From Paramoeba atlantica (taxonomy: Eukaryota; Protista; Discosea), in NCBI GenBank assembly GCA_977017575.1, contig CDRNVI010000037.1, positions 248,001 to 312,000 of the forward strand: a stretch of 64,000 nt of DNA, written 5' to 3'. This document shows, in pieces, positions 3,335-53,199 of the stretch. The position numbers and the translations under genes are program-made. Every line of letters begins with the position of its first letter. Positions within the stretch are counted from its first letter, which is position 1. The notes under the pieces are model-generated. The model was given only the letters and a program-made list of their open reading frames with translations. It ran no database searches and was not told where the DNA came from.

Positions 3335-4226
3335 TTGCGGTGGTTGTAAAACTACCGCTCTACACTCGATTATTGAAAAAAAAGTGAACAAAAACAGTGA
3401 AAATATAAAGAAGAACACAGTAATATAATAGAAGAAAAAAATATAAAAGGGGGCTCCGGTGGTCCAAAACTGAAAAAATTTTTTGAAAAAAATGGGGGGT
3501 CCAGGGGGGGGGTCCAGGGGGGGGGGGCATGGTCGATCAAATTTTTTCGAAAAAATTAGTTTTCGAAAAAAAACCGCAGAAAGGGTAGCCGGGGTCTTGG
3601 CGCGCATTTTCCGCCCCCCTACCCGGGGGTGACCCCCCCGCGTATCCGCAGGACGGGTCCGCCAAGTTCGGATTTTTTCGGAAAAATTTTTTCGAAAAAA
3701 AATTCAACTTGGCGAAAAAAATGACAAAAAAAATATTTTTCCAAAATCGTTTCCCCTATTGTATTTTGATAGTTTGGGACCTACACTAGCTTTCTACGCA
3801 GTTGTTTTCGCAAGGTATCACTTCTTCGAACTGTGGTGCGCCCCTCAAATTGACCCATTTTTGACTAAAAAAGGTGAAAAAGTATTTTTCGGACCTAAAG
3901 GGGCATTTTTGTGTCGAAAGAATGGTATGGTTGGAGTCGTATTCTCTACCCAATACGTTCGGTAGGCTTTCATTCATGCCTGCGAGTGATTTCCCACGCG
4001 CAAATGTCGGATTTAGTGCTCTGAGAGCAAAAATATGCGAAAATCACCCCATTTTTACCCGAAAATCGGCTATTTTTGGCTATAATCTTTCCGTTTTCCA
4101 GGCTAAATTTTCTTTTTTAGGCTCTTCGTTAAACGCGGCGGTAGTTTTCAACGCGAAGCGCGCAGCATGAGTGACTTCTAAGTTGAAAGCAACCACCGCG
4201 TTTAACGAAGAGCCTAAAAAAGAAAA
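3335..4226 (+). mobile_element. Element A (non-coding, A|T-inserting, 3' fold-back hairpin), young copy
   Basis: 5' TTGCGGTGGTTGTAAAACTACCGC hairpin, GGGGGGTCCA repeats and a terminal ~110-nt hairpin; near-identical to the copies at 30335, 45377, 46202 and 52301. Confidence 0.9.
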
Positions 4227-4394
4227 TAATTTTATTGTGGTGGTTGTTTGTAACCTCTACCTCTCCCTTCTTTATGGTGTTCGGGGTAGGGTGGATCGAG
4301 GACGGTCAGAAAAGGGGGACCAACCCCCCCCCCCTCCCTATTCTCGATTCGGGCATAAATCACTGTGCTTAAAAACGTAGGTATCGGAACTCGA

Positions 4395-4467
4395 GCCCAG
4401 GTTGTCCAGTTGGTAAGACATGCCGTTTATAATCTGGTGGTCGCAGGTTCGACTCCCGGCGGTTACA
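4395..4467 (+). pseudogene. tRNA-like sequence (Ile-TAT-type loop) with unpaired acceptor stem; possible SINE head
   Basis: 73 nt; D-arm tgtc-cagttggtaa-gaca, anticodon loop tttataa, B-box ggttcgactcc. Acceptor and anticodon stems do not pair. Confidence 0.55.
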
Positions 4468-4819
4468 TTTTCAGCCATACGCGACGTCCGTTAGTGGGAA
4501 GATTTGCAAAGCCCCGTTCTTCGTATCTTGAAAAGTTAACTTTACTGTAGCTACTTAACATTCCCCCCGGAATGCTAAACCGGACTGTGGTTTACATCCT
4601 TCTGTATAAATTTGTATTCAACATACTCCTTCAGTAAATGAGAAAAGATCATCCGAGAATTGCTTTACTTAAAGTTCCATTATACTAATTTTACGATTCA
4701 TTCACTCAAATTCTGTGATCTTTTTATATTGCCAAATTTTAATTTTCTTACCGTACACGTTGCAATATTGTAACCTTGTCAATAACAGACTTGGCGGATC
4801 GCTTCAATATTTTAGTTAA

Positions 4820-6274
4820 ATGCATGTGGAAGGTATCAAATCTCTTCCTTCCCATACTTCTAGTGTGAAAGAGTCCTTGGAAGAACAAACTCTTGCAACT
4901 TCCTCCGCACGAGTCGAAGAGCTCGAATGTTTACATGCCCATGCTCGTCGTGGGCGGGAGCATGCCTTGGAACGTGATAGGGACACGGAAGGGCAGATTG
5001 ACGTTGCGGATCTACCGAAAGAAATGCCAAAGGCCAGCGCAGAGGTAATGTCTTCTCGGCGTATTCGTAAAGTTCGAATACCACAACGTAGTACACCACA
5101 GGAAGAGAAGTCTTCCGATACGTCATTGAACCCTTTTGCGTTGTCTGCAAAAGCTACACCTGTAGTCCCAACTATTCTCACTGAAACTACTAAACAGGGA
5201 ACTGATAAAGGGGAAGGAAACGAACATGGAACCACATCCAGTGCTTCTGGTGTGTCAGAAGAATCAGTCTCAGATATTACCAAGGATACTTCGACCAACG
5301 TAAAGCCGTTTGAACATATAGCGAAGAATGATTTTGAGAAGACTGTTTCCGATAGCACAAGTGAATCAGAAGAAAAATCAAACCCAAAGGACGTTTCAAA
5401 TCTTACCCCTTCACGATCTCACCCATTCCTCGGCTCCGCATTTGCAGCGCCCACACCGAATTTGGTAACAAACACGGTGCAAAAAAATGACACCAAACAG
5501 CAGACAAATTCGGTCGCTCCAAACGATCTCCTTGCGGCCTCACCATTTGCGCAAACCCCCTCACGAAAATTTGAAGATGCCGCAGCAGAGCTTGAAAAGC
5601 TACAAAGTCAAAGAAAAAATATTTTTTCGACACCATCAAGCGAGTCTGTGAGTCGCTTTCATGAAGATACTCCCAGTAAAGTACAATTCAGTACTGAAAC
5701 TTCGGAGATGATTCACAAAGATACAAATTTTTGTGAGGGTCATGACAGGGCTGAAAAGATTTGGTCTTCATGCGTTGTCCGCGTCTTTTTAGCTAGCGAT
5801 GACAAACAGTGGAACGAAATTGGGCGTGGGGAGTGTAAACTTTTGGTCACAACAAAAAATACGGAAGCCGACATCGCCGCACAAGAGAAGAGTGAGTCAG
5901 ATCTCCAAATGAGCGAGTCAGAGGACGCGTCAGAAAATGAAACACCGCGTTTTACAGATATCAAGGTAGATGATATCACAGAGGGTCGCGTCGTGTTGCA
6001 TGATGAAAAAACAAAGCAAGTTCGAGTCAACGCCGGTCTTGGCACTTCCTTTACATTGGGAGTCACATCCTTGACAAGCGGGGACAAATCTTCCTCTTCG
6101 ATGCTTTTCTCAACCATTGATTCAGAGTCTCAACGTTCTCGTAGTTACCTCTTACTCCCGCTTCGCAGCGTCTCTGTTCCTGCATCTGAACGAGCCTTGG
6201 CTCTGTCCTCTTTTCAAAGACGAGTAAGAGACCTACTCACACATTTGAAAAGTGTTTCACCTCATTCATCTTAG
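4820..6274 (+). CDS. Nup50/Nup2-like nucleoporin with C-terminal Ran-binding (RanBP1-type) domain
   Basis: KASAEVMSSRRIRKVR resembles the NUP50 N-terminal importin-alpha-binding motif. The middle has sparse Phe repeats (NPF, HPF, SPF). The C-terminus has KQWNEIGRGECKLL and GRVVLHDEKTKQVRVN RanBD-like motifs. Confidence 0.6.
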   Translation: MHVEGIKSLPSHTSSVKESLEEQTLATSSARVEELECLHAHARRGREHALERDRDTEGQIDVADLPKEMPKASAEVMSSRRIRKVRIPQRSTPQEEKSSDTSLNPFALSAKATPVVPTILTETTKQGTDKGEGNEHGTTSSASGVSEESVSDITKDTSTNVKPFEHIAKNDFEKTVSDSTSESEEKSNPKDVSNLTPSRSHPFLGSAFAAPTPNLVTNTVQKNDTKQQTNSVAPNDLLAASPFAQTPSRKFEDAAAELEKLQSQRKNIFSTPSSESVSRFHEDTPSKVQFSTETSEMIHKDTNFCEGHDRAEKIWSSCVVRVFLASDDKQWNEIGRGECKLLVTTKNTEADIAAQEKSESDLQMSESEDASENETPRFTDIKVDDITEGRVVLHDEKTKQVRVNAGLGTSFTLGVTSLTSGDKSSSSMLFSTIDSESQRSRSYLLLPLRSVSVPASERALALSSFQRRVRDLLTHLKSVSPHSS

Positions 6275-6591
6275 GAAACAAAGTAGATAAGAAGAAACTA
6301 TAATCGCCGCCACTTTGCGTAGAGTTTCAACTTCTATTTGTATTTTTATTTTTCATGCCTCCAACTAGCTGAACCTACCTTTGAACTTTGCCAAAGAAGA
6401 GGCTTGGATTGCTATTGAGTACGTTAGTGAACTCTTGTGGGCGAAATATCTTTTATTATAATCACAATACATACTTTGAGTAGAAAGATTTATCGCACCA
6501 GTTATGCAATGCACATTACAATATTTTTCTTTGATGTGACGGAACGATTTAAATTGTGTTGGGCAATTTATTTTTGAAACAGAAATGACCA

Positions 6592-8106
6592 TTGTTTTGT
6601 ACAGTTTTTATCGAATTCCTATCCCTATGCATCATAGATCGCTCTGACGTTTCTTCCCCATTGCAGCGTTTCTTGCCACAACTACGGCACTCACGCACCT
6701 CGTGTCCCCTAATGTTCCGTCCTAACGCGTCTATGTTTTTAATCGCCCCACCTCTTGACCCTCCCTCTTATCGAAGTCGCGTCTTTTTCCGAAAGCGCTT
6801 TTTACATTTTCCTGGTTTTGGGCCCATCACACGGCACAAAAATTCCTATCTACATTTTCCGGCACAAAGAATCCCCTCAACCCGAACATCTTTTTTTATG
6901 CCCAATGACCGTTTATTTTCTATCCCTCACCGTACCTTCCTCCGTCACGTACTCTCCTTACAAAGAACTCCTAAACCCACCTCTTTCACGCATCGATCAT
7001 CACTTTCCCAAACAGCCCCTCTGCCCTCTTCCACAATTTCATCCAGCCCCCTGCCACGACGAAAAAATAGAAACCACCCCCACTTATCCTCGACCGCTTT
7101 TCCCATAGCCGCACCTCCTCAACCTACCCCGATCTCCTCTGTATCGACAACAACAAAAAGCTCATCTCTCCCTACTACCCCTAAACCCCCAACCTCCTCT
7201 CTCTCACCCACAGCCACATCTCAATCCCCAACCGCCCCTCTCACTACCCCTACAACCACAACTACCCGTAAAACTACCCCTAAAGTCACCACAACACCTA
7301 CAACCCCAGCCACCGCCACAACTACCCCTGCAGCCACAACAACAACCCACGCCACAACCCCAACCCAACCCACAGCCACAGCCACAGCCTCCCCCTCCCT
7401 TCCCTCCCCCCACCACTACTGGGTGACCCACGAACACCTCGACTTCGCCTTTGAGTGTCGCACCCCCTCCTCCTGGACCACACGTGTCACGCTCTCGGAG
7501 AACTTCCTCTACCTCCGTGCCATCCCCCCCACCCATCCCTCCCCCTACAACCCCTCCACAGTTAACTCTTCTTCTTTGTCTTCTTCTATATCCTCTTCTT
7601 TATCCTCTTCATTATCATCTTCATTATCTTCTTTATCATCATCTTCTCTATCCTCTTCTTTATCTTCTTCTTCTTCTTCTTCTTTCTCTCCCCTCTTTAG
7701 GAACCCCTCCCCCTCCCCATACTACCAATCCATGGTCGAGGGGCTTAGCATCAACGCCTTTGCCTACCCTCGTAAAATGCCCTGGGGGGATGCCTCCATT
7801 TTAATGGAGCGCTTCCTGGGGGCGTTTGCCCCGCTCCAAGCGGAGTACGCCGTGGTGGAGGGCCCGGAGCGCATGGACCCCGCGATGTCGGGGGTGGTGC
7901 GGGCCGGGATCGAGTTTGTCCCCGCAGGGGGGGGTGGGGGGGAGAGAGCCCGTGGGGTGGTCACCACGTGTTTTCACCCCAATAAGAGGTTTCACTATGT
8001 GGTGGTGGCGGCGGTGAGGAAGGAGGTGTGGGTGGCGCAACGGCACGGGACGGAGGTGCTGTTGGAGGAGCTGGTGAGGGGGTTGGCGTGTTTAACGGCG
8101 GCATAG
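6592..8106 (+). CDS. Hypothetical protein: Thr/Pro/Ser low-complexity region plus C-terminal globular domain (possibly PsbP/Mog1-like); start uncertain (6592, 6712 or 6898)
   Basis: 504-aa ORF. FAFECRTPSSW and the terminal HYVVVAAVRKEVW...LLEELVRGL recall the PsbP/Mog1 pattern only by eye. Confidence 0.7.
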   Translation: MFCTVFIEFLSLCIIDRSDVSSPLQRFLPQLRHSRTSCPLMFRPNASMFLIAPPLDPPSYRSRVFFRKRFLHFPGFGPITRHKNSYLHFPAQRIPSTRTSFFMPNDRLFSIPHRTFLRHVLSLQRTPKPTSFTHRSSLSQTAPLPSSTISSSPLPRRKNRNHPHLSSTAFPIAAPPQPTPISSVSTTTKSSSLPTTPKPPTSSLSPTATSQSPTAPLTTPTTTTTRKTTPKVTTTPTTPATATTTPAATTTTHATTPTQPTATATASPSLPSPHHYWVTHEHLDFAFECRTPSSWTTRVTLSENFLYLRAIPPTHPSPYNPSTVNSSSLSSSISSSLSSSLSSSLSSLSSSSLSSSLSSSSSSSFSPLFRNPSPSPYYQSMVEGLSINAFAYPRKMPWGDASILMERFLGAFAPLQAEYAVVEGPERMDPAMSGVVRAGIEFVPAGGGGGERARGVVTTCFHPNKRFHYVVVAAVRKEVWVAQRHGTEVLLEELVRGLACLTAA

Positions 8107-8497
8107 GGAGTGTTCCGCCTCCTCAGGAGAGGGTAATTTTTTTTTTTGGGGGGGGGGTGACACGTTCAAAGATGTGTCTGCACGTTGGCTCATCATTTTT
8201 TCTGTGGGCATAGGTGAGTTCTGAGTGACGCATGTCCTCAATGGAATGTTGCCGATTGTTTGGCAAGCATTTTTTTAATTCTACACCTGATTTATGGGTT
8301 TTACTCTTTAGCCATGTGTCTATTTTTTGAACGAGTTCATGAATGTTCTGCTTCCTTTTCTAGATTATTTTCTCCTAAGAAGCTAATCACAAGTATGATA
8401 GCATCCGGAATCATCTTACCTGTCTAACGAAATAAAAAGGCCTTCCTATCTCCCTCACATCTCCTGGGCGGTTCTCCCCTCACCTCTTCTCGTTTAC

Positions 8498-21967: not shown

Positions 21968-22690
21968 CCTTTTTTAGCCTCTTCGTTAAACGAGGTGGTT
22001 TTCAACTTAGAAGTCATTCATGCTGCGCGCTTCGCGTTGAAAACTACCACCGCGTTTAACGAAGAGCCTAAAAAAGAAAAATTGGTAAAGGATCATGAAT
22101 AATCTATTTTTTGAGGTGAAAAAGCTGGATTTTTCGGCAAAAATTGCGAAATTTTACACCAAATTTGGGCCGTTTTTGATGCCTTACCAGTAGGGGCAGG
22201 AGTCAAATCTGACGAAAAAAAAGTCGTAGAATGGTAGCTGAAGTCCCAAACTCTCCAAATAGGGTTTGGAAGTCGATTTCGGAAAAATAATATTTTTACT
22301 TTTTTCCGGGTCAAAAAACGTTTTTTTGTCATCCCAAAAATTTCGGAATTTTCAACCTTGTCGGACCCCTCCAGCGCGTACCAGGGGGGGGTACCCCCAG
22401 GTGGGGGGGTGGAAAGTCATCGCCGCGGCCTACTCTACAACTTCCCTGCGCTCGATTTCGAAAATCAAGATTTTGAAAATTCAAAAAACGACGTATGCCC
22501 CCCCCCTGGACCCCCCCCTCCATGGATCCCCCATTTTTTGCAAAAACAAAATTTCAGTTTTGGACCACCGGAGCCCCCTTTTATATTTTTTTCTTCTATT
22601 ATATTACTGTGTTTCTCTTTATATTTTCACTGTTTTTATTCACTTTTTTTTAATAATCGAGGGTAGAGAAGAAGTTATACTACCACAGCA
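21968..22690 (-). mobile_element. Diverged element A-related copy
   Basis: Terminal hairpin at ~21968-22080 and degenerate 5' region at ~22490-22690, with a different internal segment. Confidence 0.65.
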
Positions 22691-23146
22691 ACCTAATTAC
22701 GGTTAATCTATTTAAGATTAAAGCTGACATTTTTATTTTCCAAGCAAAATATTTTTATGCGCCCTATGACTGGAATATCAGGAAGCAGAAAGCCGCCTGG
22801 GCGAGGAATAGAGCGACTGGCATTCCTCGTGCAATGTGGAATGCGCCACCATGTTGCTACATAGTATCAGATAATTGCATTACGAGGGGCTTGCAAATAT
22901 TCTAGCTTGGATTTGGCTACGGGGAACGCAACGATGATGCGGATACCACTAGAAGAAAACAACAACGCACTTTCGAATCTAGCGGGTATAAGATGCAAAT
23001 TCGTTGTGGGCAACGCATAACCGATTTTCCCTATTTACGGAATTTCTTAATTACGGTTAACCGATTTAAGGTTAAAATCGACGAAATTTTAACCGTTAAC
23101 CGTAATTAAGATATTCCGTAATTAAGTAACGCCCGGTAATTTACTA

Positions 23147-25905: not shown

Positions 25906-25996
25906 TAGTTAGGGTATCACTATAATGCAGTAATTTGACTGTCATTTAGAGGAAATCGACACATCTCGTTTCTCTTTTTCTGTGTATACTATCACA

Positions 25997-26830
25997 ATGA
26001 TATTTTTCTTAGATGCTGCGGATAGTGTACCTAAAGCGGCTCGGGTGCGTGGAGCATCCCTCCCGCAAGAATATGAGCTCTGTCGTGTCTTGCATAACAT
26101 TTCAAATCAGCATCGCTCATGGACTACAGAGACTCCCGCATGTAACTGGAAAGGTGTAACATGCGAGTCTGCAAAGATGCAAGTCATTAAAATCAGGTGG
26201 GAGAATATGGGGCTTGAGGGAACACTATCGTGGAGGTATATTCCAATGAGTGTACAAGTCTTGACTCTGGGTTGTTTCTTTAATTTAACACCGAATGTAA
26301 TCACAGGCTCGCTCCCTGTTTTTGAGTTGCCCTCACGGCTAACAAAATTCGTGGTGGACGGCAACAAGATGACGGGGAATATTGACTTGGAACATCTTCC
26401 TGCAGAGTTGATTTCTTTTGAAATAGCGGAAAATCGCTTTGATGGAACTGTATCTCTATCATCTCTACCTCGTCATCTGGTTTTGTTAGATCTTCAACAT
26501 AATCTGTTCTCTGGGGAACTTGATCTAACAAGATTATCTCCAAACTTGGAAACACTGAATTTGGCTGATAATATGTTTAGTGGTAACTTGGCTCTTAAGA
26601 ATCTGTCAAAATCACTCGTACGACTTGAGCTAGACAATAACAAACTAAGTGGAGAATTGGAGTTGCATTTTCTTCCACCTCAAATGAGGTGCCTTGTACT
26701 TAAGAATAATGCGTTTGAGGGACACCTTGACCTCCGAAATCTGTCAGAACATTTTACTATACTGGATCTTCGGGGTAATAACATCACCTCCGTTGTGCCA
26801 ACTCCTTTTCCACATTTTTTTAGAAAGTGA
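25997..26830 (+). CDS. LRR family copy 4 (paralogue of 1656-2609)
   Basis: The first ~100 coding nt are nearly identical to copy 1, and the LRR array is collinear. Confidence 0.9.
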   Translation: MIFFLDAADSVPKAARVRGASLPQEYELCRVLHNISNQHRSWTTETPACNWKGVTCESAKMQVIKIRWENMGLEGTLSWRYIPMSVQVLTLGCFFNLTPNVITGSLPVFELPSRLTKFVVDGNKMTGNIDLEHLPAELISFEIAENRFDGTVSLSSLPRHLVLLDLQHNLFSGELDLTRLSPNLETLNLADNMFSGNLALKNLSKSLVRLELDNNKLSGELELHFLPPQMRCLVLKNNAFEGHLDLRNLSEHFTILDLRGNNITSVVPTPFPHFFRK

Positions 26831-26853
26831 TTTATAACCCCCCCTCGCTTATA

Positions 26854-30054: not shown

Positions 30055-31289
30055 CAGGGGGGACATTTGTCTGTGTAATACTAATCTGGAGAACATTAAT
30101 CTGTGTGCTATTAATCTGTGTTAATTCGAAAATATTTGGCCGGACGGAAATCTGTGTTAAAAAAACAAAAATGCGCCGCAGGCGAAATTTTTCTTATTTT
30201 AGTACATTTTTACGTCTTTTTCTCTGAAATTTTCCTTTTTCTTTGCAAAACTGGACAATTTTTTGAAAAAATATCATAGCTCCGGCATACCGAGGGGACA
30301 TTTATCTGTGTAACATTAATCTGTGTAACATTAACTTTTTTAGGCTCTTCGTTAAACGCGGTGGTTGTTTTCAACTTAGAAGTCACTCATGCTGCGCGCT
30401 TCGCGTTGAAAATTACCGCTGCGTTTAACGAAGAGCCTAAAAAAGAAAATTTAGCCTGGAAAACGGAAAGATTATAGCCAAAAATAGCCGAATTTCGGGT
30501 AAAAATGGGGTGATTTTCGCGTATTTTTGCTCTCAGAGCACTAAATCCGACATTTGCGCGTGGGAAATCACTCGTAGTCATGAATGGAAGCCTACCGAAC
30601 GTATTGGATAGAGAATGCGACTCCAACCATACCATTCTTTCGGCACAAAAATGCCCCTTTAGGTCCGAAAAATACTTTTTCACCTTTTTCAGTCAAAAAT
30701 GGGTCATTTTGAGGGCCGTACCACGGTTTGAAGAAGTGATACCTTGCGAAAACAACTGCGTAGAAAGCTAGTGTAGGTCCCAAACTATCAAAATACAATA
30801 GGGGAAACGATTTTGGAAAAATATTTTTTGTGCCATTTTTTTCGCCAAGTTGAATTTTTTTTCAAAACATTTTTTCCGAAAAAATCCGAACTTGGCGGAC
30901 CCGTCCTGCGGATACGCGGGGGGGTCACCTCCGGGTAGGGGGGTGGAAAATGCGCGCCAAGACCCCGGCTACCCTTTCTGCGTTTTTTTTTCGAAAACTA
31001 ATTTTTTCGAAAAAATTTGCTCGACCATGACCCCCCCCCCTGGACCCCCCCCATGGACCCCCCCCATGGACCCCCATTTTTTTCAATTTTGTTTTTCAGT
31101 TTTGGACCACCGGAGCCCCCTTTTATATTTTTTTCTTCTATTATATTACTGTGTTCCTCTTTATATTTTCACTGTTTTTGTTCACTGTTTTTTCAATAAT
31201 CGAGGGTAGAGCGGTAGTTTTACAACCACCGCAATCTGTGTTAATTTTACGAATTAACACAGATTAATGTTAGACAAATGTCCCCCCTG
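30055..31289. mobile_element. MITE family C (TIR caggggggacatttgtct; attaatctgtg iterons) hosting an element A insertion
   Basis: Inverted ends at 30055 and 31289; repeated aatctgtgt motif. Confidence 0.75.
30335..31234 (-). mobile_element. Element A copy
   Basis: Inverse of 3335-4226; removing it restores the host iteron cattaa|tctgtg. Confidence 0.9.
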
Positions 31290-31740: not shown

Positions 31741-33578
31741 CTAAGCGCCTTCAAGGGGGGCGTTAGGGTCACTGACAACTATCATGGAGACCATCATCCG
31801 AGCCTGGGAACGCATCAACGTGATATTAAGCTCTTGCAAGAGGATGTTTCGTGCCTGAGTGTCTGTCAAAAGACCGTTCGACACGTTGGCACGTAACGCT
31901 CCCACCTTCCACAGGACCGTCAAGGCACTTCTGCTCCATGAGCCGAAGGACTCAACAACCATGGCTGCGAACTGTAACTGAGCCGCTTCCGCTTCCTGGC
32001 GCTGCTTCCCTTTCGTTTCAGAGAAGTGTTCAGCAAAAGACCCCGCAGCCACCCAGCTAGCATTACGGACTGAGTCCAAATACTTCAATTGCTGTGCATG
32101 GGTGACTGCGAAGTCTAGAACCATGCCGCCTCCCAGTTCATAGTTGGGGAGAAAATCGCCTGGTCTGGTGAGACCTCCAGGTCCCCGATTTCCGAGACTT
32201 TATTCCCTTTGCGGAGCCATATTGGCCTTGCTGCAGAAGGAGGTGAACTGTTGGCAAATCGCATTGTGGCGGGTGATGAGACCGTGCCCGTTCTTACACA
32301 TCAGAGCATGTTCCGCATTTTTTAGGAGTGGTAAGTCACATCCTTTTGCTGGACAAGGTCGATCCTCTACCAGTGAGGGGTATCCCCAGGGGGGGGGGCG
32401 GAAAATTATCGCCGCGGCCTACTCTAGCACTTCCCTGCGTTCGATTTCGAAAAGCAAAAAATTCGAAAAAACAATCTTGACGTATGCCCCCTGGACCCCC
32501 CCCCATGGACCCCCCCCTAGACCCCCCATTTTTTTCAATTTGTTTTTTCATTTTTGGACCACCGGAGCCCCCTTTTATATTTTTTTCTTCTATTATAACT
32601 TATTACTGTGTTTCTCTTTTTTTTTCACTGTTTTTGTTCACTTTTTTTGCAATAATCGAAGGTAGAGCGGTAGTTATACAACCACCGCAATGTACCGGGT
32701 ACCCTTTTATACCGGGGGGGTATAATCGCTACCCAATATACCCCCCCTGGGCACCGTGGAAAACAAGGGAGTGGGGGGTATAAACGCTCAAAAAAAAATA
32801 GAGCGTTTATACCCCCCACCCCCTTGTTTTCCACGGTGCCATCATGTATTGCCCCTTTTAACCTCTTTGGATACCGCAAAAAAACAGGTCTTCTTTGGTT
32901 TACCGCAAAAAAACATTGGAGCTAATATACCTAATGTACCTCCCACCCACCCGCATTATACCCCCCACCCGGTATAAACGGTAAGCGAATATACCCCCCC
33001 TTAATATACAGGGTACACTTTATTATACCCCCCCTGTACATTAAGTCATACCCCCGTTTAAATCCTTGAGCTTACAAGGGGTCCCAGTCGTCCATGTCGG
33101 CTGCGTGAGCGACAGATTAAACGTATGCTGCCGTTGCGTGCAGTGTAGACGATCTGAGACCGAAGCCTCCGTGGCGCTTCCTTCGTAGTATTTGATCACG
33201 TGCGTGGGGGTCCAGGGAAAAAAGTGCCCACTCTACAGCCGTCATGACAGAGTCGTCTAGTAAAAAGCAAAGATGGGTAAGGGCCTGTGGGGGTGTAGTT
33301 CGGAGGGCGTATACCATCTGACAGAACCCCGTGCATTGACGGATTAGAGCACAGGCTACTTTGGGGTCTCCTATTAAACCTATGGCGGCTAGGGTCTCAC
33401 GTGCTGGGTCGATGGCGTATTGCATCAGGAACTCCGCGCAGTGCTCGTCCGACCCGATCGGGCTCCCAAGGATATCGAAGTTCCCGTCATGCCGGATTTT
33501 CGCCTTTGGGATCTCGGGAAAAAGCGTTGTGAGATGAGCCGAGGCAGGTGGCGTTATGATTTCACTTTTCGCAGGATT
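31741..33578 (-). mobile_element. CRE-like non-LTR retrotransposon remnant (RT end, CCHC knuckle, restriction-like endonuclease), interrupted at ~32356-33060
   Basis: Minus-strand translation gives NPAKSEII and ILGSPIGSDE (late RT motifs), YALRTTPP...GGFGLRS, CPAKGC...EHALMC, RHN, RPGD...DFAVT and AMVVESFGSW. Confidence 0.85.
32356..32690 (-). mobile_element. Element A 5' fragment inside the retrotransposon
   Basis: Ends ...gcggtagttatacaaccaccgcaa|t. Confidence 0.8.
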
Positions 33579-33717
33579 TCGCCGCCATTTTTTATTTTAT
33601 TTTTTTTTTCTTTATTTTTTTTTAGTTGTCTGCCCATTGCGCTTAGTTGCGTTTTTAACATTTCCAAGCTATTTATACTTGATGGTACTCCGAGCAAGGA
33701 GCAGACCACTGGCAGGC

Positions 33718-38563: not shown

Positions 38564-38931
38564 AAGGCGAAAGTTTAGCAAAACGGAATTACGTTCCCTC
38601 ACACAACACGTATGGAAGACAAGCCAAAGTACTGTGTTGGATACAGCTTTGCGGGTCGTTGTGGGGTATGTCTCCACTGACCCTTAGTTTTCTCTTTCTA
38701 AAGAACCATAAGTTCTTTTAGTTTCTTGCACCTTCTGATCCAGAAGATTAAATTTATTTCTAAAGTGTTAAGCCGAATAAAAATGCAAGTGATGTCGCCT
38801 ACGTCTATGAACTTATCCGTTACTCAAGGATTTTCGGGGTTTGTTTGAACACGCTATTTTTTCAAGTTGTTTATTTCGTGAGAAATAGAAAGCCGAAAAC
38901 GCCCTTGGATAAGATTAATCTTGCTTGTAAA

Positions 38932-39834
38932 ATGTTTCCCTGCTTTTATTTCATGCTCATCATGACGTTAACGCTTCACGTACATCTATCGGATACACAA
39001 CAACCTTCAATCAAACGTCAGCCAACCGATCCTAGTTCAGAGTTTCCTATATCGATTATTCGTGCCAGTAAAGTAAACACGAATCTACCACAAGAATATG
39101 AACTCGCTCGATTTATTGAAGATATGAAGAATCCTGACCCTTCATGGAACACATCGACGCCTGCGTGTGAGTGGAATTATGTACACTGTGATGATAGCCA
39201 ACGTGTTACAAAACTTGATTGGAAATGGGTAAGAAAGACTCATAGATCCGCTCTGGTTGCTGCAGGAATACTAAGATGGGAATGGTTGCCTCGAACATTG
39301 CTTTCTTGTGACGTATACCACAACCTGTTTACAGGTCCAGTATCGCTTGATGTGTTACCACCTCTCCTTATTTCGCTGAAGCTATCATGGAACAAGTTTA
39401 CCGGTTCATTGGACTTTATTCATTTGCCGCCCATGTTAGAAGAACTCCGGTTAAACAAGAACGAATTTGAATGGCGTGTTGACTTGACACAACTGCCACA
39501 GAATTTACGTCATCTAGACTTCTCGGAGAACAACCTTTCTGGTCATCTTCAGCTTTCTTGTCTACCGGACAAAATGCGATCTCTTAATTTGTCATCGAAT
39601 CAATTTTCGGGATCTCTTTCGCTCCAACATTTACCAGCCTCGCTTAGAGGTCTAACCTGTTCCTCTAATTCCTTCTCGGGTTCAGTCAAGTTTGATTCTC
39701 TTCCGGCAGGAATGAAACTACTGTGTCTAGGGATGAATATAGATTTGTATGGTGAGATTGATGGGTCCCTTTTACCTAAGAAGCTGAAGACCTTGAATTT
39801 CCACAGTACAAAAATTGTGTATAAACGCGGATAG
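38932..39834 (+). CDS. LRR family copy 5
   Basis: NLPQEYELARF, WNTSTPACEWNYVHC, tandem LRRs; recent duplicate of 55653-56555. Confidence 0.9.
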   Translation: MFPCFYFMLIMTLTLHVHLSDTQQPSIKRQPTDPSSEFPISIIRASKVNTNLPQEYELARFIEDMKNPDPSWNTSTPACEWNYVHCDDSQRVTKLDWKWVRKTHRSALVAAGILRWEWLPRTLLSCDVYHNLFTGPVSLDVLPPLLISLKLSWNKFTGSLDFIHLPPMLEELRLNKNEFEWRVDLTQLPQNLRHLDFSENNLSGHLQLSCLPDKMRSLNLSSNQFSGSLSLQHLPASLRGLTCSSNSFSGSVKFDSLPAGMKLLCLGMNIDLYGEIDGSLLPKKLKTLNFHSTKIVYKRG

Positions 39835-42583: not shown

Positions 42584-42599
42584 GACCCCCCAACAGCGG

Positions 42600-43062: not shown

Positions 43063-43227
43063 TATTATTTAAATAGCGATTTAAATAATATACCGTTCCC
43101 CGGGTTACACTAACTTCGCTATTTTTCTTTAGTTTCTTTTGAACCGCTTTTTAATGGTTACAAAGAACACAAAACAACACCCCTAGCCTCCCCCCCGTAG
43201 TCTCGCACGTCGTCTCAACATCATCAC

Positions 43228-44184: not shown

Positions 44185-45376
44185 ATGTAGGGGAGGGGGC
44201 GAAGAGGGTTGCGATGGAAGAGAAAGGGGAGGAGGGGGGTAGAGAACAGAACCTGTAGATTAGAATGGGTTCAATTTTTGAGAAGAATACGTTTCTTGTG
44301 AAATGTTGAGTATGTTTATGGCACACCGTTTTGAGGTGTTACTACACACCTCAGGGTTAAAATGCATTACAAACTACTGTAAGCATGATGTCTTGGGTAC
44401 AAAAATATCTAACTCATCCGTATTCTGGGAACGCTTTTTGATAGGTGCGGCAAGGTTTTTTAGGTAAAGTCCCCCTCATTTTCTCAGACCCCTCCCGTAC
44501 GATATAAACCATGTTCCAGGATAGTATACCCATGCCCACTTAAACCACATACCCGTTTAACATACCTATACCTTGGATAACATACCGGGGGGGTATGTTA
44601 TTCTGGTCTGCGACAGTTAACATACAACCCCCTCGTCCCACGTCTTTTTTTGTGCAACGGTACAAAACTCCAACCGTAATATCACGTACTTTTTTAACAA
44701 AATGTTTCTTTTATACGTTTTTAGATGTATTTTGATACGTTTTAGCATTTAGTACTACACGCGGTTAGTACTACACCCCCCCCTTTAATATGCACCCCCT
44801 TCCCTCCCCCCCCTTAATATGCACAAATTCCATGTTGAATTTTCGGAACGTTTTTTTGAGAGCAGATGTTTTGCCTATTTTTACCCAATTTCTTCAAAGG
44901 GCTTTGTGCTTTTAAGCCTCTGATGCGCATCTATGTATGTGGAGATAATATATATTTGTATACTTGTTCCTCTCTTTCTCCCGTACTTTTCACCCTTATG
45001 TCAGATACTGACGGAGTTCCGACCACAGTTCACTCTGTGCGTGGACCTCTGACCACTTGGCTTCGGAAGCTCCCTCCCCAACCGCAAGTAGGGGAGCGCA
45101 CATCCCTTATTATTAACAACACCCCGACGGTAACAGTTCAGGAAAAACGGCAGCGTACTGAACTTACTATATTCGAGAAACGAGAAATTTGTATGCAAAG
45201 AATCGAGAAAGCTCTACCATTTACACTGAAATGACACGTCTAACTTATTCTCTGAGCGGGATTTACATCGATGTAATTCGTTCTGGGTGGGTTACTGACG
45301 ATGTCTATGAGCGAATGTTAAAGAAATATTTACCCTATACTCTTGACAACCCCTCGACGGTTATTATCACGGACGA

Positions 45377-47266
45377 TTTCTTTTTTAGGCTCTTCGTTAA
45401 ACGCGGTGGTTGCTTTCAACTTAGAAGTCACTCATGCTGCGCGCTTCGCGTTGAAAACTACCGCCGCGTTTAGCGAAGAGCCTAAAAAAGAAAATTTAGC
45501 CTGGAAAACGGAAAGATTATAGCCAAAAATAGCCGAATTTCGGGTAAAAATGGGGTCATTTTCGCATATTTTTGCTCTCAGAGCACTAAATCCGACATTT
45601 GCGCGTGGGAAATCACTCGTAGGTATGAATGGAAGCCTACCGAACGTATTGGGTGGAGAATGCGACTCCAACCATACCATTCTTTCGACACAAAAATGCC
45701 CCTTTAGGTCCGAAAAATACTTTTTCACCTTTTTTAGTCAAAAATGGGTCATTTTGGGGGGCGCACCACGGTTAGAAGAAGGGATACCTTGCGAAAGCAA
45801 CTGCGTAGAAAGCTAGTGTAGGTCCCAAACTATCAAAATACAATAGGGGAAACGATTTTGGAAAAATATTTTTTTTGTCATTTTTTTCGCCAAGTTGAAT
45901 TTTTTTTCAAAAAATTTTCTCCGAAAAAATCCGAACTTGGCGGACCCGTCCTGCGGATACGCGGGGGGGTTACCCCCGGGTAGGGGGGTGGAAAATGCGC
46001 GCCAAGACCCCGGCTACCCTTTCTGCAGTTTTTTTTCGAAAACTAATTTTTTCGAAAAAATTTGATCGACCATGCCCCCCCCCCCCTGGACCCCCCCCCC
46101 TGGACCCCCCCCCTGGACCCCCCCCCTGGACCCCCCCCATGGACCCCCCATTTTTTTCAAATTTTTTTTTCAGTTTTGGACCACCGGAGCCCCCTTTTAT
46201 AAGTCTTTCCGTTTTCCAGGCTAAAGTTTCTTTTTTAGGCTCTTCGTTAAACGCGGTGGTTGCTTTCAACTTAGAAGTCACTCATGCTGCGCGCTTCGCG
46301 TTGAAAACTACCGCCGCGTTTAAGGAAGAGCCTAAAAAAGAAACTTTAGCCTGGAAAACGGAAAGACTATAGCCAAAAATAGCCGAATTTCGGGTACAAA
46401 TGGGGTCATTTTCGCATATTTTTGCTCTCAGAGCACTAAATCCGACATTTGCGCGTGGGAAATCATTCGCAGGCATGAATGAAAGCCTACCGAACGTATT
46501 GGGTAGAGAATGCGACTCCAACCATACCATTCTTTCGACACAAAAATGCCCCTTTAGGTCCGAAAAATACTTTTTCACCTTTTTTAGTCAAAAATGGGTC
46601 ATTTTGGGGGGCGCACCACAGTTCGAAGAAGTGATACCTTGCGAAAACAACTGCGGAGAAAGCTAGTGTAGGTCCCAAACTATCAAAATACAATAGGGGA
46701 AACCATTTTGGAAAAATAATTTTTTTTGTCATTTTTTTCGCCAAGTTGAATTTTTTTTCAAAAATTTTTTTCCGAAAAAATCCGAACTTGGCGGACCCGT
46801 CCTGCGGATACGCGGGGGGGTCACCCCCGGGTAGGGGGGTGGAAAATGCGCGCCAAGACCCCGGCTACCCTTTCTGCAGTTTTTTTTCGAAAACTAATTT
46901 TTTCGAAAAAATTTGATCGACCATGCCCCCCCCCCCCTGGACCCCCCCCCTGGACCCCCCCCCCTGGACCCCCCCCATGGACCCCCCCCATGGACCCCCC
47001 ATTTTTTTCAAATTTTTTTTTCAGTTTTGGACCACCGGAGCCCCCTTTTATATTTTTTTCTTCTATTATATTACTGTGTTCCTCTTTATATTTTCACTGT
47101 TTTTGTTCACTTTTTTTTCAATAATCGAGTGTAGAGCGGTAGTTTTACAACCACCGCAATTTTTTTCTTCTATTATATTACTGTGTTCCTCTTTATATTT
47201 TCACTGTTTTTGTTCACTTTTTTTTCAATAATCGAGTGTAGAGCGGTAGTTTTACAACCACCGCAA
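45377..47266 (-). mobile_element. Element A copy, itself interrupted by a second copy at 46202-47159
   Basis: Outer copy = 45377-46201 plus 47160-47266; both insertions excise precisely at A|T. Confidence 0.9.
46202..47159 (-). mobile_element. Element A copy nested in element A, with 29-nt fold-back
   Basis: Removal restores ccccttttata|tttttttc exactly (7 T, as in the intact copy at 47041). Confidence 0.9.
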
Positions 47267-48447
47267 TTATACCGCTCATAGAACGAATAATGTACCAACG
47301 AATTGTGATCCACAGACGATACCCGGAGGGTGTACGAAAGCCACACAATTCCATGATCGCGTTTTTAATCGCTTATTCAAGCGTCAATATAATGAGCTTC
47401 TTAGCGCGTGGCGACTTCGAAATAGCGTCCAGAAGGTTACTCGTGCGCTTGTTTTGCAATGGATTAAGGATGCACATGCACATGTATGGGCAAAAAACCA
47501 AAGCACTTTATTAAAAGTAGCACAAACTTACATTTTGCGACCTGCGACTGAGTACCCTTGGATTGAGTCAAGCGTTACAGTTGGCTCAAAAACTACTCTT
47601 GGAATATGTCCTGAACATGCCGTCTCACCCTCCTCAATTTCAAAAGGAGAAAAACTCACACAAGAATCCATTGTGGTAGAAGATAGTGCGGGCAACACGT
47701 CCCACTATGACAAAGAGTGGAAACGATTCCGCGGTCGAAAGCGATTTCTTACGACGCATGCTGTTGATACATTATGCGAAAATGTATTGCAGGCATACCG
47801 TCTAGCCCCTTCCGCAGACAAAAAGAATAGTTTGTTTTGAACACAGGAAAGACTCGATTACTTTTAGGTTTTCAGCGCAAACTGTTCAGTCAAATTTTCC
47901 CCGACTCACGAATTATTGCGGTGCTCTTTTTTAACAACCATTTTTTTTTCGTGGAACTCCGAAAGCATCTGTTGACAATATTTGATAGTTACGAGGATTA
48001 TTCTCCGATTTCTCGTCAAGATTTTCTTCAGTGCTTTCTAAAATTATTCTGTCCTCTTCTTGGTCACTCAATAGAGGATGTTCGTCTTCGACATGCTCCA
48101 GTCATGCAGCAGGAGCCTACGCTAAATGAATGTGGAATACATGTAGTGAACAATTTATGTTCATTCCTGTTCTATCCTGCCACATTCAGTAGGGTGAATA
48201 ATGTTTTGACCCGAAAGAATCTTTCTAAGTCATGGTGGCCGTGCGGACCAGGAATTCCATCACTTCCTGAAAAACAAAGTACTGACGAAGAAACCGTCGG
48301 AGCGCTCCGTGACTCAGATTCCGATTGTGAGTATACAATCAATTTGATAAAAGATGTGCAGTTTGAAGATGCGACCGCGGATGGATGGGAGCTGTCCGAA
48401 AATTAATGACGGAGATGCAAATTCCTATCCAAAATAAGTTTATGTGC

Positions 48448-49305
48448 GCGCTATTATACTCAAATTTTACACTGATATTTTTGCTTGACTTCTGCTTGAC
48501 TTTAAGAAAATCTTCTCGAGTTCGTGGGGCTCTACTGCCGCAGGAATACGATCTTTCTCGAGCCCTGCGCAACGTTCCTAATCTTCGAACCACGTGGACC
48601 ACAGACAATTCTGCATGTAAGTGGATGGGGGTAAAATGTGATGCTGACCTACAGGTTATAGAAATCAAGTGGAGTTATATGGGCCTTGAGGGTACGGTTT
48701 CATGGCGAGATTTTCCTCGAACACTTCGAGTTCTTATCATGGGACAATCTGCAGCATGGTACAGGAATAGGCTCACAGGATCTCTATCGAGTCCTGATTT
48801 ACCACCGTTACTCGCAATGTTTAACATCGAATTCAACAATTTTAGCGGCGAAATAGCCCTAGAATATCTGCCAGCTAACCTTCTATCATTTGAAGTCGCA
48901 CAAAATTCCTTTGAAGGCACAGCATCAATTCATGCACTTCCTTTGACACTAATTAAGCTGGATCTTGATAAGAACCTTTTCTCAGGGCGGTTAAATTTAA
49001 TGAATTTGCCTTCAAAATTCGAACGTCTTCTCATGTCGAACAATATGTTCAGTGGGAGTATCGTTCTGACGCATCTACCAAACACGATATTGTACGTTGA
49101 TTTGTCAGACAACAATCTAAGCGGAGAAATTGATTTGTCCTCTCTCCCACCAGTACTCACTGATTTATCTTTACGTAACAATAACTTCTTCGGACACATA
49201 GACCTCTCTAATACGCCGGATTCTCTGTTACGGGTAGATCTTCTTGGTAACAACATTACTTCTGTGACACCATACCCATTCCCCGACATTTTGCTTCTTC
49301 GCTAA
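48448..49305 (+). CDS. LRR family copy 7
   Basis: RVRGALLPQEYDL, WTTDNSACKWMGVKC, about 8 LRRs; ATG chosen inside track ORF 48385-49305. Confidence 0.9.
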   Translation, partial: ALLYSNFTLIFLLDFCLTLRKSSRVRGALLPQEYDLSRALRNVPNLRTTWTTDNSACKWMGVKCDADLQVIEIKWSYMGLEGTVSWRDFPRTLRVLIMGQSAAWYRNRLTGSLSSPDLPPLLAMFNIEFNNFSGEIALEYLPANLLSFEVAQNSFEGTASIHALPLTLIKLDLDKNLFSGRLNLMNLPSKFERLLMSNNMFSGSIVLTHLPNTILYVDLSDNNLSGEIDLSSLPPVLTDLSLRNNNFFGHIDLSNTPDSLLRVDLLGNNITSVTPYPFPDILLLR

Positions 49306-49709
49306 TTGGGGATACGGGCATTTAAATGCAATCATTGCAATGCATTTGCATTCTTCCCATCTCCAACTCTTGTTTTGCTATTTGGCACAATATGATATTG
49401 TGCCCTCTTTCTTAGACACTGTTATTCACTCACTAGGTTTTTTTTGAATCCATTTTTTGTAGAATCCATCACCGCCATAAAAATGAGAAATAGAGAAACA
49501 CAGTACCAGCATATCTCTCTTTTGTTTAGAAAAACAGACATTTAGGTATTTTCTATAACCACAACCTCAGAACACATGAGAGAAAGAATATTACTACGTT
49601 GCACATTCATTCCTAAGATTTGCATTTCAGAGCAGTGAAACGACTTCAATGCTAGTGTATCACTACATTTTTCTTTTACCTGTGATTCTTCTCTCGGAAA
49701 ACCTCTATT

Positions 49710-51611
49710 GTGACTCGGCTGACCAGTACAGGCCATAAAAGTGATAGTGAAACACTTTTGCAAAATGTTTCCGAATACATCTCCCGGAGTGAAGATTTTC
49801 ATGGAAAAAAGAACAACACTGTATCTTCTACGCTGGAAGATCCTGCATTAGTGTCAAGAAAATTTGATAATAAATCTACGCTCAACACATTCGCTACTCA
49901 TACGGGGCGTTCACACGGAAGCGAAGCTCGGGCTATACACCCTCCCAAAAGCAGCCGTGCTTCTTTGAGGACACACCACAGATTTCTACATGGTCAGGTT
50001 TCGCGATGTGCGCATAAAAATTGTGCCGTCGAGAAATCTGTTTTTGACGTACAGCGCAAAGAGCCGAAGGGCAGGACCGGAGGAGTCCATCTTTCTAAGC
50101 TACCACAATCCAAGAAGAAAAATGAATACGGTCGAGGTACCTTGACAAAACAAAGAGAACGGTGTCATGCATCACGTAAACCTTGTCCTTCTTTAAAAAA
50201 CGGCTTTAGTTCAGGAGAAACTAAAAAGGTTGGTACGCGTCTTCAAGCGAGTGAAGTCTCTAGAAAATCAGACCGTGGTGCAAAATGTATGGTAAAAACA
50301 ACGAAAAAGAAAACTAAGAAATATGTAAAAGTAGACAGTTCATTGAAGGGCAAGCCAGAGAGTGTCCGAGCACAATCGAACGGTGATTCTCAAAATTCTT
50401 TTCTAGTAAATGCGCTACCCGATTTACCATGGACACCAAGCCTTGCAAATATCTCACAAATGTTATCAGAGTATTTCAATTCTGGCTCGTATAATGAAAA
50501 AAGCATTAGTACTCTGGAGCCTGAAGACAGCGTAACTACCTTAATGAATCATCATACTGTCTTGCCTCAAGGGCACTTAAAGGGTGCCCCTGCTCAAAAA
50601 AAGACCATATTGTCTTTACATTTTCCTTCTGGCAGTTCTTTGGTTTCTGATGCAGGTCTGTCAAGTTCCTACAATGCAGAGGAATCTCTAGATCGACTTT
50701 TAGATCAACTCTCCGAACTCAAACCAGTGGATAGCATCTCGTCTCTGGAAGAAGCCATGCAAGCTGATGGCTATCCAAGTTTGCCTGTCAATCGTAATGA
50801 ACAGGTGGGTCGCAACGAAAGGCTAGACTCCAGAAATGACGACGCTACCCGTCCATCGGTCGTATCGCAACCCTTACGAAGAACGAAGAGTCCAGTTCTT
50901 CAAAATTCTGAACTAAGCTACGATAGCGTTTTATTGGATGTCAGAAATCCCTTCACAGGTTTTAATTTGCTTGAATCGCCATCTTTTTACACCTCAAGTT
51001 TGTCCAATTTAACGAGTCTAAGCAACGCGTGGCTTGAAGAGAATCCCTATGAAGGAAAATCGTATTCCGATTCCGAGTTTGATTTAGAATCTTATTCCGA
51101 TGTTAACTTTCCGTTACATTCTACAGATCCTCTGTATTTTTCCGATAGGCCGAAGTCCCGTTCTTCTTTGCGAGGTGATGAAAAGGAAGCAGTCATTCTT
51201 ACCACGCCGCGTAGTCCTGCAGGAATGAACACAAATCCGGACTTTAGTCCAATACCATGGAGATGTAGTCATATAGAAAAAACGAATTCGACCTCATCGG
51301 TACGTGTTCCGTGGTCACTCTCTGGAACAAAATCTTATTTTAACCCAAATTTTCAGAGCGAACAAAGTCCTTTATCACAAAGGCCTGCGAATGTGAGGCC
51401 TCATAAGTCAAATTCCGGCAGATTAGGTGTAGATTCTTCTGTCCTTGGTGATAAAGTTGTCAGTGGCTGTGCTGTTTCGGACCAGAGTGAGAAAGAGAGC
51501 AAACAGGAAAACAGTGGTACACGAGAAACTCCTATCTCATCGCTTTGGACCTATGTTGAGCGAATACTGGAATGTTTCACATTCCTTTTTTGTAGGTGCT
51601 TTCAGCGTTGA
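49710..51611 (+). CDS. Ser-rich low-complexity protein; probable true start at ATG 49649 in another frame (signal-peptide-like), implying a frameshift
   Basis: The long frame has no Met for 193 codons. ATG 49649 encodes MLVYHYIFLLPVILLSENLYCDS and overlaps it. C-terminus RILECFTFLFCRCFQR. Confidence 0.7.
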   Translation: MTRLTSTGHKSDSETLLQNVSEYISRSEDFHGKKNNTVSSTLEDPALVSRKFDNKSTLNTFATHTGRSHGSEARAIHPPKSSRASLRTHHRFLHGQVSRCAHKNCAVEKSVFDVQRKEPKGRTGGVHLSKLPQSKKKNEYGRGTLTKQRERCHASRKPCPSLKNGFSSGETKKVGTRLQASEVSRKSDRGAKCMVKTTKKKTKKYVKVDSSLKGKPESVRAQSNGDSQNSFLVNALPDLPWTPSLANISQMLSEYFNSGSYNEKSISTLEPEDSVTTLMNHHTVLPQGHLKGAPAQKKTILSLHFPSGSSLVSDAGLSSSYNAEESLDRLLDQLSELKPVDSISSLEEAMQADGYPSLPVNRNEQVGRNERLDSRNDDATRPSVVSQPLRRTKSPVLQNSELSYDSVLLDVRNPFTGFNLLESPSFYTSSLSNLTSLSNAWLEENPYEGKSYSDSEFDLESYSDVNFPLHSTDPLYFSDRPKSRSSLRGDEKEAVILTTPRSPAGMNTNPDFSPIPWRCSHIEKTNSTSSVRVPWSLSGTKSYFNPNFQSEQSPLSQRPANVRPHKSNSGRLGVDSSVLGDKVVSGCAVSDQSEKESKQENSGTRETPISSLWTYVERILECFTFLFCRCFQR

Positions 51612-51813
51612 ATGCTCTTCTTAAGTAGATTAGAGCGTTTGTGCAGTATTACTTCGTGGATAGGTTTCGCCAATACAGATTGCTGAAATTTTGCTTTTGA
51701 GCAAAATCAAAGGCGGTCATTGTATGACCTAGTAGTAGAGCATAAAATTTTTTAGTTAGAGCCTCACTGAGTTGTATTCTTGTAGTTTCTATGCTTGCAC
51801 ATGTGATAAGCTA

Positions 51814-51908
51814 CTGGACCCCCCACTAGTTATCTGTCACACCCCTACCCCTCTAGTTTCTGTCACCTTTTGACCAAAAGTAGTGACAGATAACTAAGGG
51901 AGGTACAG
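51814..51908. mobile_element. 95-bp mini-MITE (tagttatctgtcac iterons)
   Basis: TA-flanked inverted ends; related end at ~19984-20040. Confidence 0.65.
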
Positions 51909-52300
51909 TATATTGAACGTGTTCTAACAATTACCCCCCCAGTAATAGAATCAGTTTCGAGCCAAAATAGTTAAATCTCTGTTAGTGGGGGAATGTTTTT
52001 TTGTAGGAAAAGAGCTCTTTTACTCGTGAGTGCAATGATTTTCTGCCCAGCCAGGCCCGCAACTAAGCGATCCCCGCCCGCCCAATCACCCTCATCCTGT
52101 CCTCAATAACTTCTTTTCATTTCGCTTCATGAACTTTTCAAATGGACACTGCAAGTTTACCCTTTCTGTGGATGGCACAGGATGGAACGAAATGGCACAG
52201 GATGGCGCGGCGAGTCTAGTTTTAGGAATCTTCATCCTCCTAAGTAGCATTTTAAAATTGGAGTAAATTTTCGGATGCTCTTTTGTACTGTAGTTTTGCA

Positions 52301-53199
52301 TTGCGGTGGTTGTAAAACTACCGCTCTACACTCGATTATTGAAAAAAAAGTGAACAAAAACAGTGAAAATATAAAGAGGAACACAGTAATATAATAGAAG
52401 AAAAAAATATAAAAGGGGGCTCCGGTGGTCCAAAACTGAAAATTTTTTTTGAAAAAAATGGGGGGTCCATGGGGGGGGTCCAGGGGGGGGGTCCAGGGGG
52501 GGGGGCATGGTCGAGCAAATTTTTTCGAAAAAATTAGTTTTCGAAAAAAAACCGCAGAAAGGGTAGCCGGGGTCTTGGCGCGCATTTTCCACCCCCCTAC
52601 CCGGGGGTGACCCCCCCGCGTATCCGCAGGACGGGTCCGCCAAGTTCGGAATTTTTCGGAAAAAATTTTTTGAAAAAAATTTCAACTTGGCGAAAAAAAT
52701 GACAAAAAAAATATTTTTCCAAAATCGTTTCCCCTATTGTATTTTGATAGTTTGGGACCTACACTAGCTTTCTACGCAGTTGTTTTCGCAAGGTATCACT
52801 TCTTCGAACTGTGGTGCGCCCCTCAAAATGACCCATTTTTGACTAAAAAAGGTGAAAAAGTATTTTTCGGACCTAAAGGGGCATTTTTGTGTCGAAAGAA
52901 TGGTATGGTTGGAGTCGCATTCTCTACCCAATACGTTCGGTAGGCTTTCATTCATGCCTGCGAGTGATTTCCCACGCGCAAATGTCGGATTTAGTGCTCT
53001 GAGAGCAAAAATATGCGAAAATGACCCCATTTTTACCCGAAATTCGGCTATTTTTGGCTATAATCTTTCCGTTTTCCAGGCTAAATTTTCTTTTTTAGGC
53101 TCTTCGTTAAACGCGGCTGTAGTTTTCAACGCGAAGCGCGCAGCATGAGTGACTTCTAAGTTGAAAGCAACCACCGCGTTTAACGAAGAGCCTAAAAAA
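52301..53199 (+). mobile_element. Element A copy (no fold-back extension)
   Basis: gca|TTGCGG ... gcctaaaaaa|tattg. Confidence 0.9.

Follow-up and report, generated by a model that had tools for sequence, protein, structure and literature searches.

Element A and its anatomy

The 64,000-nucleotide (nt) stretch analysed here, referred to as the window (positions 248,001 to 312,000 of contig CDRNVI010000037.1, assembly GCA_977017575.1, Paramoeba atlantica), contains a repeat family, element A, represented by five near-identical non-coding copies of about 0.9 kb and by relics. The copy at 52301-53199 on the plus strand, 899 nt long, served as the reference; it was compared with the window by blastn, and the matches were then read against the raw sequence. 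Both agree with an initial annotation of this DNA, in which five such copies, at the same coordinates, and older relics had been noted. As set out below, element A is very probably non-autonomous: it would descend by internal deletion from a Helitron-like rolling-circle transposon and be moved in trans by RepHel, the protein of a 12.9-kb partner in the same genome.

The 5′ end reads TTGCGGTGGTTG in all five window copies, and its nt 3-24 fold into a hairpin of 9 base pairs (bp; -8 kcal/mol, z -6.3). At the opposite end, the last 109 nt of the reference copy form a much larger hairpin (-40 kcal/mol, z -7.6), terminating in ...CCTAAAAAA with T as the next base. The two ends are related by an asymmetric 10-bp inverted repeat, GCGGTGGTTG at nt 3-12 and its complement CAACCACCGC lying 22-32 nt inside the 3′ end (22 nt in the reference), and both halves sit in hairpins. 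A G(5-10)TCCA tract begins at nt 160 and comprises two to five units among the window copies. The fixed 5′ end folded in a 22-nt hairpin, its inverse about 21 nt inside the 3′ end and the variable interior tract of the initial annotation are thus all borne out; the 3′ end, however, proves ragged and not fixed. Diversity along the element is lowest in the first 100 nt. Likewise, in the distal 20-bp stem of the 3′ hairpin, which is always present, 0.6% of sites differ from the consensus compared with 2.4% in the inner hairpin, four times less. These two regions are likely the cis-acting parts.

Insertion between A and T

With the reference as query, and 40 of 1609 flagged candidates scored, the genome holds at least 44 near-full-length copies at 94-100% identity, while the exact 22-nt 5′ end occurs 382 times. 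The base preceding that end is A in 359 of the 382 occurrences, G in 18, T in five and C in none. At least one of the G-preceded cases (C103:113389) heads a run of adjacent same-strand copies, where an upstream copy ending ...AAAAAAG would yield exactly that G. For the tabulation of flanks and 3′ ends, 39 independent full-length copies were used. The 5′ flank is A in 39 of 39, and T follows the 3′ end in 37 of 39, the two remaining cases being the inner copy 46202-47159, which has a long arm, and a duplicated locus with a substitution. Flank repeats of 5 nt or more were found in none of the 39. The genome-wide flanks consequently display the A|T preference, with no consistent target-site duplication, that had been claimed from the window. 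Pairwise diversity among copies is about 1-3%, and the copies are young.

Four empty sites define the junction. The copy at 46202-47159 is nested in another copy of element A, between the seventh A and the T of the outer copy's ...GAAGAAAAAAA|TATAAAAGG, with nothing gained and nothing lost. That inner and outer copies are identical over their 5′ 108 nt is attributable to the generally low diversity of the first 100 nt. Without the copy at 30335-31234, which terminates in ...AAAAAAG followed by T and whose final base is therefore G rather than A, the small inverted-repeat element (MITE) around it regains its 15-nt iteron period. The joined flanks of the reference copy match an uninterrupted paralogue at L046:4800-4970 (contig C91), and those of a copy on L017 match L047:8880-9050; both junctions fall precisely at A|T, without duplication and without loss. 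Judged from these junctions, element A evidently inserts exactly between A and T without target duplication, as the initial annotation had claimed from the nested copy, the iteron and a third site. At that third site, excising 45377-47266 restores a frame of 262 amino acids (aa), and shifts of 1-2 nt do not. The frame had been taken for a pogo transposase, an identity now set aside: a Pfam search with its four pieces gave no match (a weak hint of Ulp1 protease at E 0.11), and none of the genome's 119 DDE_1 (pogo-type) matches lies there, so that only the restoration of the frame stands.

The AT-rich segment at nt 90-111 of element A is itself a recurrent target of further insertions of element A (window 47160; L055:8755-9075; C91:79977-80086), which leave solo 5′ fragments of 91-111 nt, at times three in tandem.

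A long RepHel partner

The domain Helitron_like_N has 29 matches across the genome. A search proposed with the initial annotation, for a long element with the same two ends encoding HUH-Rep and PIF1, succeeded on two other contigs, C43 and C41. The C43 element (G000:C43:151113-163974; 12,862 bp) starts a|TTGCGGTGGTTGTAAAACTACCGC and ends in an A-type hairpin, ...GAGCCTAAAA|t. In Pfam, its frame of 2975 aa (152882-161806) matches DUF6570, Helitron_like_N and PIF1; the Rep domain contains the HUH motif ALHFHSVLW and the two-tyrosine motif YLIKY and is followed by the PIF1 helicase. Atlas neighbours of the protein share DUF6570 and Helitron_like_N, the two Rep-side domains, and the helicase part matches Pif1 structures. 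No Pfam match to an endonuclease domain (Exo_endo_phos) was obtained in either half of the frame.

The second long copy, on the minus strand of C41 at about 229598-241907, is 99.73% identical to the first over 10,016 nt, its frame being split into 574 and 2257 aa where that of C43 is intact. The two copies (12.3-12.9 kb) have differing flanks, and both are bounded by A and T. Long element and element A agree at 110 of the first 110 nt and at 102 of 105 positions of the 3′ hairpin. Two A-like units, at nt 1-831 and nt 43-860, make up the long element's 5′ leader; both break off within the hairpin and so cannot fold, as expected if a complete hairpin would end transposition. Metagenome contigs scanned for exact matches, once with the 5′ end as pattern and once with the 3′ arm, gave none.

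Tandem repeats of about 267 nt occur in the N-terminal portion of the RepHel frame (G000:C43:153400-154700), and C43 and C41 differ in how many they have. Downstream of the RepHel frame, inside the long element, a 113-aa frame matches RRM_1 (E 5.6e-7) at L047:4303-4641 (G000:C43:162302-162640); it may represent either a gene captured from the host or an accessory single-strand binding protein, and the C41 copy is expected to have it in the corresponding stretch.

Proposed mechanism and alternative explanations

The case for mobilisation by RepHel combines the two shared termini, the HUH/two-tyrosine Rep with its PIF1 helicase, A|T insertion, young copies, and long copies 99.7% identical at different loci. 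In the mechanism this suggests, Rep would nick the donor strand at A|TTGCGG, with the 9-bp 5′ hairpin two bases further downstream, and the helicase would then peel the strand off 5′ to 3′. The 109-nt 3′ hairpin, whose GCGGTGGTTG/CAACCACCGC stem is also that of the 5′ end, would serve as the stop signal; the 3′ end would arise in the distal right arm, at a point that is not sharply fixed, and the strand would be joined into a target nicked at A|T. Head-to-tail arrays would fit the reuse of an existing element junction, itself A|T, as a target.

Several points weigh against this account. The interior of element A is just 81-91% identical to the long element, so that the present A master is not a fresh deletion of the two long copies. 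Because the element starts with T, a 1-nt T duplication is indistinguishable from none, an ambiguity noted for other Helitrons as well (PMC5148889). Duplication of AT formally fits 36 of 39 copies; ends in ...AAAAAAG|T are about as frequent as ends at the neighbouring A positions, so that no terminal A is required, which argues against an AT duplication. Finally, the apparent recent activity is read from the similarity of copies.

Some other single-strand HUH or recombinase system might instead move element A, with Helitrons as mere neighbours; the long elements would then have arisen by chance from A fragments joined to a RepHel gene. The leader, with its two A-like units, makes such an origin conceivable. 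Yet the two long copies lie at different loci, their flanks differ where read, and their identity of 99.7% extends over the whole length between and including the A-type 5′ end and the A-type 3′ hairpin. Such identity in copies each bounded by A and T indicates that the whole 12-kb unit transposed with these ends, and this alternative is accordingly very improbable. Slightly less credible still is a cut-and-paste inverted-repeat transposon, or MITE, duplicating an AT or T target. The 36 of 39 copies that parse as AT[...]AT favour it, as does the richness of the genome in DDE transposases (the 119 DDE_1 matches). Yet element A has no terminal inverted repeats, its sole inverted repeat being asymmetric, 10 bp long and 22-32 nt inside the 3′ end; the 3′ termini of the copies are spread over 10 positions, the G-ended copies break the AT parsing, and both ends are common to an element that encodes RepHel. 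Retroposition through RNA, in the manner of short interspersed elements, has next to no likelihood: a one-sided ragged end could pass for variable truncation, but there is neither a poly(A) or simple-repeat tail nor a target duplication, tRNA and Rfam scans of the whole window gave no match, it is the 3′ end that varies and the 5′ end that is exact, the reverse of retroposons, and the partner codes for RepHel, not reverse transcriptase. The initial annotation had left a choice between a recently active, non-autonomous rolling-circle-type element and an atypical retroposed one; the RepHel partner with both ends, together with the A|T flanks, upholds the former and disposes of the latter.

Ragged 3′ ends and fold-back extensions

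Among 57 distinct 3′ hairpins, the arm continues 0-13 nt past CCTAA, with all intermediate lengths seen and outliers at 33 and 58 nt; arm lengths of 9 nt or more include flanking Ts that match the arm by chance. The 3′ end is ragged across 10 positions inside the 109-nt terminal hairpin, varying within CCTAAAAAAGAAAA. The commonest end among the 39 independent copies is GAAAA (16 copies), followed by GAAA (nine), CCTAAA (four) and AAAAAA (three), GA and CCTAA (two each), and G, AAAAA and GAA (one each). Inheritance of end length by lineage was considered and rejected: the Spearman coefficient is 0.14, and the same class is shared by 26% of close pairs compared with 23.5% of distant ones. Given that end length is independent of the relatedness of copies, the 3′ end is set at each event.

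In a few copies, extensions of 31-58 nt that are mirror images of sequence upstream of the hairpin point to fold-back copying. The outer arm of the inner copy 46202-47159 runs 33 nt past CCTAA, 23 nt past the common GAAAA end, and mirrors two variants of the copy's own inner arm. A copy on C8 (154805-154839) has a 34-nt extension with the same two mirrored variants, and one on C29 (645953) a 31-nt extension of standard sequence; the loci on C8, C29 and C50 were read through 35-nt patterns only. The palindrome at 54313-54533 folds at -120.7 kcal/mol (z -22), and its extension of about 54 nt mirrors sequence foreign to element A upstream of the inner arm. This 54-nt unit is present singly at a minimum of 11 other loci, at 90-100% identity, and mirrored at 54313-54533 only. 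The mirrored extensions at distinct copies show that the inner side was copied onto the 3′ end at least three times, and at least one extended end was carried to a second locus.

One possible, if somewhat doubtful, reading is that the folded-back hairpin primes DNA synthesis that completes the 3′ end and in some cases lengthens it, and that would copy sequence upstream of the inner arm. The mirrored variants shared by C8 and the window, the C29 extension, the mirror at 54313-54533 and the fact that end length is not inherited all speak for it. Against it, the always-present 20-bp stem has 13 one-arm variants and none that is mirrored, and the palindromes could also represent replication errors at the hairpin after insertion. 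Routine arm-to-arm templating of the whole hairpin is rejected on those 13 one-arm variants; templating, if routine, is limited to the part beyond the cut.

A literature search retrieved no description of hairpin-primed 3′ ends in Helitrons. If true, such priming would place a rolling-hairpin-like step within a rolling-circle transposon; the ragged ends would be accounted for, eroded termini would be restored, and sequence capture would gain a new route. The nearest analogy is the rolling-hairpin replication of parvoviruses (PMC11575299), likewise an HUH nuclease system, in which the 3′ end of a terminal hairpin can prime copying of the adjacent strand. The likeness would be confined to the rare fold-back extensions, and unlike parvoviruses, with their linear genome and two hairpins, element A is a chromosomal transposon with one large hairpin.

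Relation to known Helitron groups

Canonical Helitrons begin with 5′-TC and end in CTRR-3′, insert at A|T and lack inverted repeats, and have a short hairpin 10-12 nt from the 3′ end; Helitron2 elements insert at T|T or T|C, carry asymmetric terminal inverted repeats and form hairpins at both ends; and Helentrons combine Helitron2 features and a T|T target with an endonuclease domain, their short HINE (DINE-1) derivatives carrying subterminal repeats, a 3′ stem-loop and internal repeat tracts (PMC5148889, PMC4067079, PMC11417382, PMC13085455). Three features common to Helitron-like elements are present here: RepHel in the autonomous member, termini shared with non-autonomous copies, and no target-site duplication. 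Beyond these, the family is a mixture of the groups, with a canonical A|T target, Helitron2-type ends, a HINE-like short derivative and no endonuclease domain found.

With canonical Helitrons (HLE1; Helraiser, PDB 7LCC) the family shares, besides the target evident in the flank counts above, the absence of duplication on insertion, a 5′ end that is exact where the 3′ end is looser, a 3′ hairpin that presumably serves as terminator, and an HUH two-tyrosine Rep joined to a PIF1-like helicase. It departs from them in its termini. The 5′ end is TTGCGG, hence TT and not TC, and forms a hairpin; the 10-bp inverted repeat is present; and the variable 3′ end lies within the 109-nt hairpin and has no fixed CTRR, CTAA occurring only at the shortest ends. 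The similarity of the partner's helicase part to Helraiser, moreover, reaches E 9e-8 only.

The structure of the ends is that of Helitron2 (HLE2), with an inverted repeat whose halves both lie in hairpins, whereas the T|T or T|C target of that group is not that of element A, given T at five of 382 5′ flanks. The closest comparison is with FoHeli1/2 of Fusarium oxysporum (PMC5148889), which likewise combine an asymmetric inverted repeat, its 3′ copy tens of nt inside the end, with a hairpin at both termini of which the repeat is part, a RepHel without endonuclease domain, no target duplication and ends joined head to tail. Element A differs from FoHeli1/2 in its target, A|T rather than T|T/C or TNAT|A; in a 3′ hairpin of about 109 nt with the terminus within the stem; in a ragged 3′ end where theirs are reported invariant; and in a 2975-aa partner frame with a 1350-aa N-terminal part to which no function is assigned.

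The comparison with DINE-1 and Helentrons drawn in the initial annotation holds for layout. Like HINE/DINE-1 elements (PMC4067079), element A is a short, high-copy, non-coding derivative with the termini of its autonomous partner. In both, the inverted repeats are subterminal, a 3′ stem-loop is present, the interior holds a variable tandem or microsatellite tract with a GTCC motif, and the number of terminal bases varies among copies. The comparison fails in the transposase, in which no endonuclease domain was found, and in the target, A|T and not T|T; furthermore, the variability of element A is one of ragged position in the stem, not of T-run length.

Host genome and significance

The window encodes a MIX protein (PF18529), and nearly all of its long frames lie on one strand. 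The genome, of 45.7 Mb, contains two full-length KMP-11 genes (151 and 150 bits), and none were found in control genomes. From KMP-11 and MIX, the host is taken for a kinetoplastid. In this lineage Helitron transposases are stated to be absent (PMC8788227), 57 trypanosomatids were found to have no DNA transposons (PMC12278014), and Merlin alone is reported in the free-living relatives of trypanosomatids (PMC12278014, PMC8101967). Helitron-like frames have been mentioned in a diplonemid (PMC10161547), and a literature search yielded no work linking Helitrons with free-living kinetoplastids. The present genome is rich in DNA transposons, and with 119 DDE_1 matches the host is not a trypanosomatid in transposon content.

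A complete and apparently recently active Helitron-like family, with some 380 short passengers, is resident in this kinetoplastid genome. The loss of such elements is thereby shifted to a later stage of kinetoplastid evolution. Elements of this kind are already known; the end structure of the family is unusual, and the lineage is one in which this kind had been reported absent. In joining an A|T target to Helitron2-type ends, the family straddles the usual divide between two Helitron groups. Further, its oversized terminal hairpin and its ragged, at times fold-back-extended 3′ ends provide a natural system for the study of how rolling-circle transposons define their 3′ end, the step that underlies gene capture by Helitrons.

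Further copies, relics and repeats in the window

The copies and relics of element A in the window are collected in Table 1.

Table 1. Element A copies, relics and related structures, in window coordinates
Feature	Position	Strand	Remarks
Reference copy	52301..53199	+	899 nt; 5′ hairpin nt 3-24; G-rich TCCA tract nt 160-195; 3′ hairpin nt 791-899
3′ terminal hairpin of reference copy, 109 nt	53091..53199	+	right arm with CAACCACCGC at 53168-53177, complement of 5′ end
Copy	3335..4226	+	97% identity to reference; 3′ terminus ...GAAAA, next base T
Copy	30335..31234	-	96% identity to reference; sits in iteron of small inverted-repeat element (MITE)
Outer copy, 3′ part (nt 109 to end)	45377..46201	-	3′ terminus ...GAAA, next base T
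Inner copy	46202..47159	-	nested at A|T after nt 108 of outer copy
Outer copy, 5′ part (nt 1-108)	47160..47266	-	100% identity to reference 5′ end
Old relic of 5′ region	3089..3210	+	74% identity to reference
Older relic, related subfamily	21964..22691	-	5′ end degenerate; 3′ hairpin recognisable
Relic, 5′ 314 nt	32377..32690	-	variant loop in 5′ hairpin; truncated on 3′ side
Relic of element body (reference nt 556-808)	54041..54303	+	87% identity; ends in left hairpin arm
Near-perfect palindrome, ~217 bp (folded paired span 54313-54537)	54313..54533	+	young A-type 3′ hairpin, outer arm extended ~54 nt

Other sequences make use of parts of the element. A mini-derivative of about 230 nt at L055:8504-8735 fuses the 5′ 122 nt to the 3′ hairpin. 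The 16 nt at the 5′ terminus of element A (a|TTGCGGTGGTTGTAAA) also open a different repeat at window 2732-2800, which departs from element A thereafter and has the look of a second non-autonomous family with this 5′ end. Twelve nt after the 3′ end of the copy 3335-4226, a variant 5′ end (TTGTGGTGGTTG) opens yet another sequence, at 4239-4480, which includes a tRNA-like stretch with a T-arm-like GGTTCGACTCCC and without an ARAGORN call.

Quite apart from these repeats, leucine-rich-repeat genes are dispersed through the window at 1656-2609, 25982-26830, 38845-39834 and 55242-56555, with pairs at 77-99% DNA identity (repeat families D5 and D8).

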